Assembly (NCBI GenBank): GCA_030704615.1
Contig: CM060733.1
Location: forward strand, 42,284,001 to 42,348,000
Direction: 5' to 3'
Origin: Takakia lepidozioides
Taxonomy: Eukaryota; Plantae; Bryophyta
DNA length: 64,000 nt
This document shows positions 34,612-57,727 of this stretch, piece by piece. The notes under the pieces were generated by a model that saw nothing but the letters and a program-made list of their open reading frames with translations, did not search any database and was not told the DNA's origin. The translations under genes were made by a program, and so were the position numbers. How positions within the stretch are numbered: position 1 is the stretch's first letter; each line of letters opens with the position of its first letter.

Positions 34612-35910
34612 CAAACACACCAACCCTATTAATTACAATAGTTCCAATTCTGAATTGCATCTGCTTCTCTCTGTAGTCGAAAAGGCATTCACCTTTTTGT
34701 CTCCATTGTCCCACCATTGACTGGGGTCAGAAAGTGTTCATTCCAAAGCTTCTCCTCATCTCTGTTATCTATTTTTGGATACTTTCCTGCTGCCACATCG
34801 GCAGTAACTTGTCAAAGTCACAAATATCCACCCAAAAAACTAACTTACAGAATTCAATATGCATCTCAGCGCCGAGTCTGATGAGAGGGAAAAACAGGCT
34901 GAAATAGGTCAAAGAAGAAGGTGCCTCACCACATTGTCCTTGACCTTGTGTCATAACTCATAGAGAATTTGACCGACCATCAACCCAAAAAGACCTCTTG
35001 AGTGTGCTGCTTGTGTCTGTAGTCAGGTAATGTCGGATTGGTCTGTGAAAACCACCACGGTGCAGCTGAGCAGGCAGAGATTGAAATACGGCCTGCTAAC
35101 CTTGTAAACATCAGGAAGAATACCAAATCATGGTACTAACAGGAGCCAAGAGCCCACATTTGCAGGATGGACAAACTTCTTCACATCGTACATTAAGAAA
35201 AGCCACACCTTGCGATTGCAGTTGTCAACAAACACCCCAACCCCACTTATTACGTACAGAGTTCCAATTCTGAATTGCATCTGCTTCTATCTGTAGTCCA
35301 ACGGACATTCACCTTTTTGTCTCCATTGTCCCAGCTTCTCCTCATCTCTGTTATCTGTTTTTGGATACTTTCCTGCTGCCACATCGGCAGTAACTTGTCA
35401 AAGTCATTCCAAACGACCACAGATCCACCCTGCAATGAGCTAACTTACAGAATTCAATATGCATCTCAGGGCCGAGTCTGATGAGAGGGAAAAACAGGCT
35501 GAAATAGGTCGAAGAAGAAGGTGCCCTCACCACATTGTCCTTGACCTTGTGTCATGACCCATGGAGGATTTGACTGACCATCAACCCACAAGGACCTCTT
35601 ATATGTGTTGTTTGTGTCTGTAGTCAGGTAATGTCGGATTGGTCTGTGAGAACCACCACGGTGCAGCTGAGCAGGTGAAACACGGCTTGAGTCTGATGAG
35701 AAGGCAAAACAGGCTGAAATTGGTCGAAGAAGAAGGTGCCCTCACTACATTGCTTGAAACCCCTCCGCGCTCAAGGATGGCCGGTATGAGAACCACCACG
35801 GCGCAGCTGAGTAGACAGAGATTGAAACATGGCCTGAGTCTGATGAGAAGGCAAAACAGGCTGAAATAGGTCGAAGAAGAAGGTGCCCTCACCACATTGC
35901 TTGAAATCCC
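34612..35910. repeat. Local tandem duplication (about 34612-35095 vs 35229-35680) containing four copies of a ~65-bp unit
   Basis: gagtctgatgag...aaaacaggctgaaat(a/t)ggtc(g/a)aagaagaaggtgcc occurs at about 34874, 35474, 35689 and 35836. Confidence 0.85.
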
Positions 35911-53282: not shown

Positions 53283-53626
53283 TTTGGATTTCTTCTTTCT
53301 ATGGAAGATGAAAGGATGTGTCATGTACCATGCTGGAACTGAAACTGTTTCTCAGAACAAATGACATTGCTCCAAGAGTCTAGGTGTTTATCCTCATGGC
53401 ATTTTGTAGGACATTAGAGAACCAATATTTGTGCAGAGGTGAAGGGAAGTTAGAGTAACCGTTTGATTGCTTTTGCAAGAGATGGTGCTCGATGGCGGTG
53501 GCAAGGGATTCCCATTTCTCTCCAAACTGGTGTACCGAAGATGGAGGGTTGGCTGCCTCATCAGAATTCAGAAGAAAACTCGCCATGTCTGTCTGATTCG
53601 AGTTATGCCAGGAGCTCCTGAGCTTT

Positions 53627-54830
53627 TGGCGGTCGTGATTTTGATGTCATCAAACATGGAACCATAGTTCCGTAACCAGGACCGGAGGCTCTTTTCGGAG
53701 CCTACCCAGATGCCAAAGCCGTTGTCGATATAGCGCTTAAGATAAAGCAACTCTCGCTCCGATGGGCACACGTACTCCATGTACATCTCCAATCGACAAA
53801 GGAACAAACAAGCATAAACAACTGCAAAGTTGCTCCCCATCGCCGTCCCGCGAATTTGGTGCCAAAAACTATCATTGAACTCAAGGTAATGGTGTCTCAA
53901 GACTAATCCAGCGAGGGTCAGGATCAAGTCTTCTTTGTGTTTGGTGAAATTACCTCCAATAGCACATTCAAGCTCATACAAGCCAAGCTCGGTGATGATG
54001 CTGGGATACAGAGATTCCACGTCAAACGTAAAAAGAAGAGCATGCGAGGGGACCTCGAGTTGGGAAACCTCTCGAAAAAGCGTGAGAGAATCAACCAAAT
54101 GAGTGGGTTCCTTGAGAAGTACTGGAAGGAGTTGGTGATGGAGCCAAATTGAAGCATGCTCGAAGATGTAATTGTTGTAGGAACAAATGGGTCTTCCAGC
54201 AAGCACGGGTTTGTGTGGAATGAAGTATAAATCACAAGCTTGAAAGTCCATGGATGACCGAGGGCGTTGGCGGATGTAATTCCATTCTTTGGTGGAGATC
54301 GCAAACCTGTAGATTGGATGACAAGATAGCACTTCCAACCTCGACCAAAGTTCTTCCCACGATACGGAATCCACGGGACGATAAACTTCGGTGTCTGAGA
54401 GTTGCCGCATCGCCTCTTGCATGTACCAAGACTTGTCCATAAGCACAAGACCAAGATTTTTGTCGGCCGGCTTGATAACAAGGTCCGGATCCGACCTCAA
54501 TCTTTTGAGAGCAAGTCTCAAGTGTCTCGGCAGACAAGGTCGTGCATTCCGGGCGATTTGATCCAAACGGCTAGACAAAAGATCATTACCTTCTCGAATG
54601 ATGGCCTCGAGCGGTTGAGATTCCACTGGCGGATTGAATGATGGATTCGGAACGCGCCAAAGAGGAACCTCCTCGTTGTCTTTGCCGGAGAAGAACGTTT
54701 GCAACCTCAAGCTTCGAGCAAAATTGTTGAATTCGGTGATGATTGAAGATCGGGAAGGGGGAAGAGGACCAAGAATGTAATTGAGACCAAGGCCTAGGAG
54801 TTGTCGCTCCGTAAAGGAGAGAACCCTCTT
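53627..54830 (-). CDS. PLE reverse transcriptase, N-terminal and core part (inverted segment, 5'-truncated)
   Basis: Open frame from KRVLSFTERQLLGLGLNY through RT motifs to YIDNGFGIW...KITTA. Confidence 0.85.
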
Positions 54831-55492
54831 GCTATATCGACGACGACTTTGGCATCTGGGTAGGCTCCGAAAAAAGCCTCCAGTCCTGGTTACGGAACTA
54901 CGGTTCCATGTTTGATGGCATCAAAATCACGACCGCCATAAGCCCGACGTCCGCCGACATCTTGGATATCACATTCTTCAAAGGAGACGATTTCATCCAA
55001 ACTCGACGGCTCTCTATTAGATGTCATCAAAAAGCCCAGAACAAGTATCAATACTTGCCTTGGTCCTCGTGGCATCCACATCACCAAAAGAAAGATTTCG
55101 TCATCGACGAGCTCCAACGGTACGTAATACGAGAAAGCACCATCCAAGGGTTCAACCATTTGCGACTTTTGTTTTACAAACGTCTTCAAGCCCGAGGTTA
55201 TCCGGCGGCGTTCATCCGGAGTTGTTTTACCAAGATCTCCTACGACCTCAGATCCGTTCTACTCGACCAACAGACGCAACGCGTAGTTGAGGGTAAACGG
55301 GCCCCCCTTGTTCTTAAGCTCGACTACTCTTCGTACACTCGAGCTTTAAACTTGGGGGCCACCCTAAACCCTAGACTCTACGAGTTGCTTCAGCAAGTCC
55401 TGGAGCTTCGGTTTCTTCCTCGAGCAATGATTTGTTGGAGGAATCCGCGAAAGCTGAGTTCATTCTTAGTTAAATCTAGAATGATAGGATGA
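54831..55492 (+). CDS. PLE reverse transcriptase, C-terminal part (YIDD to thumb)
   Basis: YIDDDFGIWVGSEK...DILDITFF...KYQYLPWSSWHPHHQKK...NPRKLSSFLVKSRMIG followed by a stop. Confidence 0.85.
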
Positions 55493-55664
55493 TTTTGTAG
55501 TGCAAATGTCCCTAGCATTATTAATTTTGCCTCTTTGATAGCCTTAGTATTGATGTTAAAGTCAAAGGGTTCCAACAATTAATTTGGACCATTGACTAAT
55601 TAATGCAGTCTTGACTTGGAGGCTAAATTAGTGCTTTAGTGGCATTATTATTGCCTTGGGAATT

Positions 55665-55710
55665 ATCCCATATCGTTTGCACATAGTGAAGGTGCTTTTC
55701 TAGTATATAA
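55665..55710 (+). promoter_or_regulatory. Putative plant snRNA-type promoter (USE plus TATA)
   Basis: ATCCCATATCG (10/11 match to RTCCCACATCG) at 55665-55675 and TATATAA at 55704-55710, 28 bp apart. Confidence 0.45.
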
Positions 55711-55742
55711 GGATAGGCTTGGCTCTTAGGACTTCATCTCTT

Positions 55743-55798
55743 GGTGTTCCAGTGATGAGCTTGAGCAATCAAGCGAAACTTGTTTGGAATAAAACACC
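55743..55798 (+). ncRNA. Minimal type I hammerhead ribozyme-like motif (C3>G variant)
   Basis: GGTG-TTCCA-GTGATGA-GCTTGA(GCAA)TCAAGC-GAAAC-TT-GTT-TGGAA-TAAAA-CACC. Stems I and II pair and stem III is minimal, as in PLE-associated hammerheads. Confidence 0.6.
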
Positions 55799-56369
55799 TT
55801 AACTCTATTTGTGTCTCCACACTTAGAGAAGTTGAGAGTCTAGTCCTTGCCCGCCCGGGCAACTTGGATCGAAGGTCGAAGGGGTGCTCGGTTCCAAGGG
55901 GAATCCCAACCCTTGGATACTTCCGAGGCTTTTTTTCTTTCCAAAGCATGGGCGTATATAGCCTTCCGTTTTACGAACCTCTTTTTGAAGGTGGGGCATA
56001 TAAGTTTTCCAACTAGGGGTTGAGACTTGACCCTATGTTTGTGAGTGCCTTGAGCGCATGCTTGCCCATAGTGAGCAAGATTTTTGTCGCTAAACAAGGA
56101 GGAGCAAACATAAAAAAGCTTACGGTTGGAGCGAAAGTGCCTCATTCTTCAATTAGAGAACCTTATCTCGTGAGGGCGGGAGTCCTTGCATAAGACATAA
56201 TAGTCTTATAACATCCCTTTAGGCACGATAGGCGCACTTTGTATGCATTTGTCTTGGTTTTCGTTGCATTTGTATTTGGGTCCGAACCGGCCCCCCTTAA
56301 AATTTACTGTCTTTTTCCAGTATTTTTTCTACTTTTTGTTACCTTTGCAAGCCTTTGTTGACCACCTTG

Positions 56370-56389
56370 AACCCTAAACCCTAAACCCT
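56370..56389 (+). repeat. Telomeric repeat (CCCTAAA), about 3 units, at the PLE 3' end
   Basis: AACCCTAAACCCTAAACCCT read directly. Confidence 0.85.
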
Positions 56390-56644
56390 GGGACCTGCAA
56401 TTTGATGGGGTCATAGCCACTCCACTTTTGATTTGGAAATGGTGGGTCTTGGGACAAGCAAAATTGGATAAAGCTAGGTTTTAATTTGGTCAAACCAATT
56501 TTTTTCTCACTTTTTCTTTGGGCCCTGATATTTGAGGTCTGGGCCAATGGTATAATCTCACAATTGCCACGGTGCAAAGCCCCTACCCTCCCAGGTGTGC
56601 TGGGTAGCATTGTCGGTGGCTCCAAAGAAACAATCCATGGATCG

Positions 56645-57727
56645 AAGATTCTCTTTTTACGCTTAGCATCGAAGCGAGCCTTCCTTCGCCGTTGCAACTG
56701 CCTCAATGTGCTGAGCTGCTGCTTGTCGGATTTCATCTAGTCCTTCCAACATCTCGAGTCGTTCCTTTAATGACTCTGATTGTCACCAATCGTTCGGTAA
56801 TGGCCAATCGTAGAGATGGGATTTCTGTCTCGATTGGCATGATGAACTCTAACCCATAAACCAATGAAAAGGGGGTATGTCGAGTAGTTACCTTATGGGT
56901 TGTGTGAAATGCCCACACGGCCGAAATTAACTTGGTGTCCCAATCCCTTTTGTGCTCCCTGATTGTCTTGGAGAGAATGTTGCACAGGGTTTGGTTGGCG
57001 CGCTCCACCTGCCCACTCGTTTGTGGATGATAAAGGGTGGCATTGTGATGCTTGATGGAGAATGCCACCATCATTTCCTCGATGATGTCGTTGATGAAGT
57101 GAGATCCTCTGTCACTCACTATCTCTTTTGGGCATCCGAATCGGGAAATGATATATTTATAAATGAAAGAGGCGGTTACCTTTGCGTTGGCTCTCTTAAC
57201 CGCTTTGGCTTCTGCCCACTTGGTCAGATACTTAGTGGCTATAATGATGTAGCGATTTTGTCGACTCGATGCAGGGTGCACTTCCCCTACATAGTCGATC
57301 CCCCACTTCTCAAACGGAGCAAGGGGGAGAGTGGGACTAACGGCATTCCGAGCCTGTTATTTCGCTTGGCGTACCTTTGACAAGAGTCGCATTTTCGCAC
57401 ATGCATGTGCGCATCTTTGAACATGGAGGGCCAGTAGTATCCTACCCTCAAAGCCTTTTGCACTGTGAGCCGCCCTGCAAAGCGTCCTCCGCACATGCTA
57501 TCATGGGCTGACTCTAAAATCTGGGGAACCTCCTCCGGGGTGATGCATCGGCTCAAGAGTCTATCCAATCCCCTTCTATAAAATTGCCCTCCCACAAGAG
57601 CAAACTTCATGTTGCGCAGTCGAAGCCTTCGTCGCGCATGTCGATCCAATCCCGGGGGAAATTCCAGGGTGCTTAAATAATGAGCTAAGTGTTCATGGAC
57701 TCGGCTCATTTTTGGTATGTCATGCAT
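56645..57727 (-). mobile_element. Ty3/gypsy integrase fragment
   Basis: HDSMCGG...GYYWPSM...CDSCQR, YLTKWAEAKA, IVSDRGSHF, YHPQTSGQVERAN and TPFSLVYG. Confidence 0.92.

Follow-up and report, generated by a model that had tools for sequence, protein, structure and literature searches.

Positions 55665-55936 of the window, by which we mean the whole 64-kb stretch of Takakia lepidozioides DNA analyzed here, lie in the tail of an endonuclease-less (EN-less) Penelope-like element (PLE). The features of the element are listed in Table 1. Its reverse transcriptase (RT) gene is present as two halves on opposite strands, linked by a 113-nt inverted overlap (53622-53734 and 54831-54943, 94% complementary). 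The split across 53568-54943 looks like an inversion or fold-back at insertion, and inverted, 5'-truncated copies are a known habit of PLEs (PMC8557442). A BLAST search of 53400-56500 against the whole window returned this overlap only and no further copies. In an alignment, the C-terminus of the RT, ...CWRNPRKLSSFLVKSRMIG*, agreed with the ends of the RTs of its relatives, and the catalytic YIDD was changed to YIDN (KRYIDD in all relatives versus KRYIDN here). The RT had 95 homologues with 46-66% identity, many from metagenome or Logan contigs and including uncharacterized proteins of Cryptomeria, Selaginella, and Ginkgo. A Pfam search found no endonuclease domain on it.

Table 1. Features of the Penelope-like element in the window.
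Feature	Position	Strand	Basis or remark
Inverted 5' half of the PLE RT gene, N-terminal motifs to RT5	53568-54830	-	ORF list, homologues, alignment; 5'-truncated
3' half of the PLE RT gene, RT6-7/thumb, no GIY-YIG endonuclease	54831-55492	+	natural family stop codon at 55492
USE-like box ATCCCATATCG	55665-55675	+	one mismatch to plant USE consensus RTCCCACATCG
TATA box TATATAA	55704-55710	+	48 nt before hammerhead core
Predicted transcription start zone, TCA at 55734-55736	55731-55739	+	from distance to TATA box, ~32 nt
Type I hammerhead, decayed copy	55743-55798	+	core GTGATGAG, helix II 55759-55774, GAAAC 55775-55779
Hairpin TTGCCC-gccc-GGGCAA	55847-55862	+	in sequence and predicted fold
Nested hairpin, stem CTCGG-TCCAAGGG / CCCTTGGA-CCGAG, 9-nt loop GAATCCCAA	55887-55927	+	compensatory changes
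T7 run	55930-55936	+	not a conserved feature
Telomere-complement tail AACCCTAAACCCTAAACCCT, 3' end of PLE	56370-56389	+	complement of plant telomere repeat

Since the RT reaches its natural stop codon without a GIY-YIG domain and the element ends in a CCCTAAA tail, we classify it as an EN-less, telomere-type PLE. Elements of this type have been reported from Selaginella, from rotifers, and from fungi (PMC4209133, PMC6431247, PMC8557442). The name PLE-X, in use for Selaginella families with a CxC motif that target 28S (PMC8557442), is not adopted for the present element. A hammerhead followed by reverse-complement telomere repeats is the described 3' end of EN-less PLEs (PMC6431247, PMC8557442). 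The same order was found in the window and in three relatives (L007, L011, and L054). The tail of the window copy holds only 2.7 repeats, after which LTR-retrotransposon DNA begins. A Ty3/gypsy-type integrase core fragment (rve, E 7e-7, 56733-57281, minus strand), unrelated to the PLE, lies directly past the tail, and the PLE is thus now amid other transposon DNA. A separate observation concerns the C-terminal RT motif TLNP, which is encoded by telomere-complement codons (CCCTAAACCCTA) about 130 nt upstream of the stop codon in the window (55362-55373), in L003, and in the Selaginella element L084 (7616-7629). In L001, TLNP is retained and its codons differ. These codons could be an internal telomere-pairing site, or a coincidence through shared ancestry.

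The tail was compared among ten divergent lineages of the RT family (the window, L001, L007, L008, L011, L021, L028, L031, L054, and L082), with Selaginella L084 in addition. The leader, which follows the hammerhead, could be aligned with that of the window in one relative only, L001. The earlier note on this DNA had reported a USE-like ATCCCATATCG, a TATATAA 28 bp further on, a T7 run, and two hairpins, and all of these were found at the positions it gave. It had also mentioned a hammerhead-like fold, which we regard as a true homologue of the intact hammerheads of the relatives. The predicted cut in the window lies between 55784 and 55785. Nine relatives carry CTGANGAG...CGAAAC-NN-GTT/TGG, with the cut at the slash, or in a fuller form CCA-CUGANGAG-helix II-CGAAAC-NN-GUU/UGG. 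CUGANGA was present in all nine relatives having the motif, and L082 has a separate core defect, CAAAAC. Helix II varies in sequence yet stays complementary (GCUUGA/UCAAGC versus GCUCC/GGAGC, GCC/GGC, and others), and so does distal helix I (GGUG/CACC versus CAUG/CAUG, GAAGCUA/UAGCUUC, and AGUA/UACU). Double changes were found in 4 of the 11 predicted hammerhead pairs, and helix I has open ends. Every relative has a six-letter palindrome at helix III, a stem of 2 bp (ACUAGU, ACAUGU, or ACCGGU); the window has ACUUGU in its place. A palindromic helix III is the feature behind the dimer model proposed for PLE hammerheads (PMC4209133).

When the window copy was held against the catalytic core pattern, CUGANGA...GAAA with a UH cleavage site, it failed at one position: its core reads GUGAUGA, with G at 55752 in place of the invariant C3, while GAAA and GUU are intact. 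Established mutagenesis leads one to expect that a C3-to-G change abolishes hammerhead cleavage. Because of this change, the YIDD-to-YIDN change in the RT, and the inversion that splits the gene, we consider the window copy to be a dead fossil with no present function. Rfam did not match the hammerhead of the window, nor those of the nine relatives with intact cores. Its silence is therefore not evidence against a hammerhead; Rfam models miss this type with a short helix III. In a metagenome scan, a strict hammerhead pattern found 0 loci and a relaxed pattern found 70, mostly of other PLE clades. A relaxed pattern also picked out core-like repeats at 34878-35872 of the window, which were rejected as hammerheads for having no helix II or helix I pairing. 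They are four copies of a 33-nt motif with CTGATGAG...GAAA, a repeat and not a ribozyme.

We then consider the TATA box in relation to the hammerhead. A TATA[AT][AGT] motif was found 32-62 nt before C3 in eight of the ten lineages, against 0.89 expected from shuffles of the local sequence (P about 1e-7). The flanks of the box are otherwise unalignable, and the lineages share 40-66% protein identity. Selaginella L084 has TATAAGTA at -58 from its C3, and the canonical box is missing in L001 and L021 (TACTTAA and CATAAAAG). A CA dinucleotide lies 29-32 nt past the box in the window (55735-55736) and likewise in L007, L011, L021, and L054. If it were the start, transcription would begin 7-16 nt upstream of helix I. 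The cassette stands 212-616 nt past the RT stop codon in every lineage with both on one contig, and telomere repeats follow the hammerhead at +160 in L007, +172 in L054, and +352 in L011. Where units stand in tandem, as in L007, L008, and L011, 185-450 nt lie between the predicted cut and the start of the following ORF1. In L007, a two-repeat CCCTAAA tail plus 11 nt is all that separates the leader from the ATG, so that no other promoter fits there. From the conserved distance to the hammerhead and the place before the next ORF1 in arrays, the TATA box is likely to be a real promoter belonging to the PLE.

TATA-like boxes (TACTTAAAGGG, TATAAATAGGGG, and TATATAA) were also seen 39-55 nt upstream of the hammerhead core in other, probably non-plant PLE families, at 18 of 44 distinct loci (L015, L020, L026, L029, L041, L048, L060, L066, and L068 among them). 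Coupling of promoter and ribozyme may thus be general in PLEs. These boxes, together with the fixed distance to the hammerhead among lineages so diverged and the lack of room for another promoter in L007, argue against a reading in which the USE-like box, the TATA box, and the T7 run are chance or relic motifs in a 3' UTR and transcription comes from elsewhere. That reading draws on the deadness of the window copy and on a USE-like box that by itself is at chance level in the window. It also draws on the only PLE promoter dissected by experiment, that of Penelope, which is described as internal and TATA-less, with an intron in the 5' UTR (PMC2377424). We judge it unlikely.

The TATAWAR motif might instead act in RNA, as a plant near-upstream polyadenylation element that ends the RT mRNA ahead of the hammerhead or as a stem-loop bound by the RT. 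A position about 210 nt past the stop codon is where a poly(A) signal might naturally lie, and the box is flanked by inverted repeats in L007, L054, L011, and L008. However, its letters fit the TBP consensus TATA(A/T)A(A/T)(A/G) and not AAUAAA, genomic copies finish in telomere repeats and not in poly(A), and conservation as part of the element extends downstream to the hammerhead and leader. An action in RNA therefore seems to us highly improbable. The inverted repeats themselves are short and lie upstream of the hammerhead in the same four lineages (at 2800-2860 in L007), as in CCTCC-TATAAAAA-GAGGAG and CTCC-CTATAAGA-GGAG.

The USE-like box was examined in the same lineages. Matches with at most one mismatch numbered 2 in the window against 1.24 expected. 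Within the zone from -125 to -50, such a box was found in two of the ten lineages, the window and L021, against 0.009 expected; with the window left out, as it had been picked for the motif, the count is one of nine (P about 0.01). L021 has two copies of ATCCCACATTG, with one mismatch each, 22-23 and 4 bp from its TATA-like box. L008 has GTCCCATAATC at -87 from C3, a distance identical to that in the window, with a gap of 28-29 bp to the TATA box. Nothing comparable was found in the other seven lineages. The box is thus no constant part of the cassette, yet it is probably not pure chance, and it may boost the promoter in some lineages. The promoter that the earlier note had placed in the 3' region of the PLE was in this way upheld in part. 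The TATA box ahead of the hammerhead recurs in eight of ten lineages, while the USE is confined to the window, L021, and L008.

The same note had proposed a separate gene at this place, namely a type-3 (USE+TATA) Pol III gene in the PLE tail whose structured RNA of about 200 nt would end at the T7 run and be the partner of the TERT-related RT. Plant U6, U3, MRP, and TR genes use USE+TATA promoters (PMC8287931, PMC6765143), and the window resembles them in having a one-mismatch USE-like 11-mer ahead of a conserved TATA box. The boxes of L021, one of them at a Pol III-type spacing, and of L008 also speak for such a promoter. In Arabidopsis, the USE and TATA boxes are 23-24 bp apart in Pol III genes and 32-34 bp apart in Pol II genes (PMC8287931). 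The 28 bp of the window falls outside both classes, which are those of Arabidopsis and may not be those of the host. With a USE in 3 of 10 lineages, no conserved terminator, and no match to an Rfam small RNA, the stretch further differs from plant type-3 genes.

The leader bears on this reading as well. The 206 nt at 55731-55936 folded better than all 200 shuffles (z = -2.9), which agrees with the structured stretch that had been described and would suit a Pol III gene. The hairpin at 55847-55862 was not recognizably kept in L001. In the nested hairpin at 55887-55927, 13 of 13 pairs were paired in both the window and L001, and 6 of these had changed on both sides between the two sequences, against 27-65% paired in sliding controls. 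From these compensatory changes in a comparison of two sequences, we take this hairpin to be real and conserved. At the place aligned to the T7 run, L001 reads GGCCCCTTATTAGG, so the run is not kept although the hairpin just upstream of it is. No T4 run lies between the predicted start and T7 in the window, which favors a Pol III gene; a T4-free 195 nt would arise by chance about one time in three, as estimated from base composition. More T5-T6 runs stand ahead of the telomere tail of the window, at about 55982, 56081, 56312, 56323, and 56333.

In eight relatives (L001, L008, L011, L021, L028, L031, L054, and L082), a T5-T6 run was observed 6-64 nt past the hammerhead cut, and it is absent in the window copy. 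Such runs within 70 nt of the cut in eight of ten lineages exceed the 3.5 expected from composition (P about 0.0015); the leaders around them are rich in T and CT, some with (CT)n tracts. A short Pol III product would be compatible with this enrichment, but the runs are not about 145 nt past the cut, where the T7 run is. A Pol III transcript would never reach the tail because of the T5-T6 runs before it, and its RNA would be without CCCTAAA, the sole part whose use to the RT is obvious. The recognizable end of the unit is the telomere-complement tail, about 440 nt beyond the end near 55935 that had been proposed.

A telomerase-like RNA partner had been suggested too. The search for a template asked for a CCCTAAA permutation extended by 1 nt or more, no further than about 200 nt past the USE, and matches to TR covariance models were sought as well. 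A plant telomerase RNA was rejected, since no template lies near the USE. The first CCCTAAA past it is about 700 nt away, at 56372, and there was no Rfam match at E up to 10. Rfam gave no relevant match for the window at the gathering threshold or for 55000-56600 at E up to 10. A known snRNA or snoRNA was rejected likewise. The lone weak match, ceN111-like at 55481-55545 (E 0.06), is well below gathering and was taken as chance. With the spacing fitting neither class, the USE missing in most lineages, the T7 run out of place in L001, and no telomerase-RNA template or Rfam match, a separate Pol III gene ending at T7 appears very unlikely.

At slightly better than even, we favor the reading that the stretch is the element's own 3'-terminal module of promoter, ribozyme, leader, and telomere tail, and not a separate gene. 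Its order is the RT stop codon, the TATA box, the hammerhead, the leader with its hairpin, and the CCCTAAA tail. In this module, a spacer of about 210 nt, which holds the USE-like box in this copy, would lead to the TATA box; transcription would start about 30 nt past the box, just upstream of the hammerhead that lies a few bases on, and two to three CCCTAAA repeats would close the unit. The ribozyme would cleave off the first ~50 bases, cap included, and leave an RNA that takes in the leader and the telomere-complement tail. Where units are arrayed head to tail, the cut RNA would continue into the next unit, through its ORF1 and RT. The tail would pair with the G-rich telomere overhang and so prime reverse transcription, as has been proposed for Athena/Terminons (PMC6431247). 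Since the RNA has to pass many T-runs, Pol II is the most likely polymerase. If the downstream hammerhead cuts too, a read-through RNA would lose its tail, which would count against the model.

The module would then act as a pseudo-LTR or as a HeT-A-like device that promotes its neighbor. The cassette alone, from the cut site to the tail, could be a minimal non-coding retrotransposable unit. This comes close to the built-in non-autonomous unit suggested earlier, with other borders. Three contigs from different sequencing runs (L008, L009, and L010) are rotations of one ~3.9 kb unit of ORF1, RT, and cassette, which suggests either perfect tandem arrays or a circular form. In Selaginella L084 (GL377752.1; 603-2709 and 7743-10071), a TATA-hammerhead module stands ahead of a 1.96-kb block with telomere repeats at its end. 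A second 1.96-kb leader block, 98% identical, lies 3' of the RT gene and is not preceded by a hammerhead, so the promoter-hammerhead layout is not universal.

Several known systems share parts of this layout. Like Athena/Terminons of rotifers, Coprina of fungi, and the Selaginella elements, the element has a TERT-related RT without GIY-YIG and a 3'-terminal hammerhead followed by reverse-complement telomere repeats; the head-to-tail arrays and the two-ORF layout of the relatives are also shared with them (PMC6431247, PMC8557442, PMC4209133). In Terminons, the repeats come directly after the hammerhead, whereas here a gap of 160-590 nt holds the conserved hairpin. The plant hammerheads compared here resemble animal min-HHRs in their palindromic helix III of 2 bp, whereas those of Selaginella PLEs, which lie in pLTRs (PMC4209133), have been described as canonical. 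In Penelope and Chlamys, the transcription start lies within the pLTR, and in Penelope and Chlamys-3_cRei an upstream partial copy drives the downstream copy (PMC8557442). The predicted start here would resemble that of Penelope (D. virilis) and Chlamys-3_cRei in its place in the terminal part bearing the hammerhead region. Unlike the Penelope promoter, the window has a canonical TATA box, and as the Penelope promoter is reported to be TATA-less and internal, the analogy is positional only.

The promoter of the Drosophila element HeT-A was reportedly described by Danilevskaya et al. in 1997 as lying at the 3' end and "promoting in tandem", driving the next element in a head-to-tail array. The PLE here would be like HeT-A in attaching to telomeres and in having a 3'-end promoter aimed at the next unit of the array. 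HeT-A differs from it in belonging to the non-LTR (LINE-type) elements, in having a poly(A) tail, and in lacking a ribozyme. In L1Tc (Pr77) and R2, a promoter or co-transcript is followed directly by an HDV-like ribozyme whose self-cleavage defines where the element RNA begins. Plant LTR retrozymes have a 5' module of promoter plus ribozyme (PMC9695139). These elements differ from the PLE in the class of ribozyme (HDV-like) or of element (LTR retrozyme), and none ends in telomere repeats. No description of a TATA box, with or without a USE, ~47 nt upstream of the ribozyme was found in the literature searched. The TATA-to-hammerhead coupling with an occasional USE-like box is thus a modest addition, the element itself being of a known kind.

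Among retroelements, EN-less PLEs are most closely related to telomerase, and to our knowledge, the making and trimming of their RNA are not known experimentally. A further proposal, which we consider unlikely, is that the EN-less PLEs of land plants use a SNAPc-dependent USE+TATA promoter to launch a template RNA that is trimmed by the ribozyme and tailed with telomere repeats. If true, the promoter class would be shared with plant telomerase RNA, so that a TERT-related retroelement and telomerase would be directly parallel in their regulation, and the RT would have as its dedicated template a short transcript of snRNA type, made by Pol III or Pol II. As the local copy is a fossil, the wider value of these observations is in the comparison across lineages. 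A TATA box set so that transcription would begin at the hammerhead gives a concrete, testable picture of how the RNA of EN-less PLEs is made. A promoter in the 3' tail, an uncapped 5' end set by the ribozyme, and priming by the tail on chromosome ends would together explain the tandem arrays of these elements.
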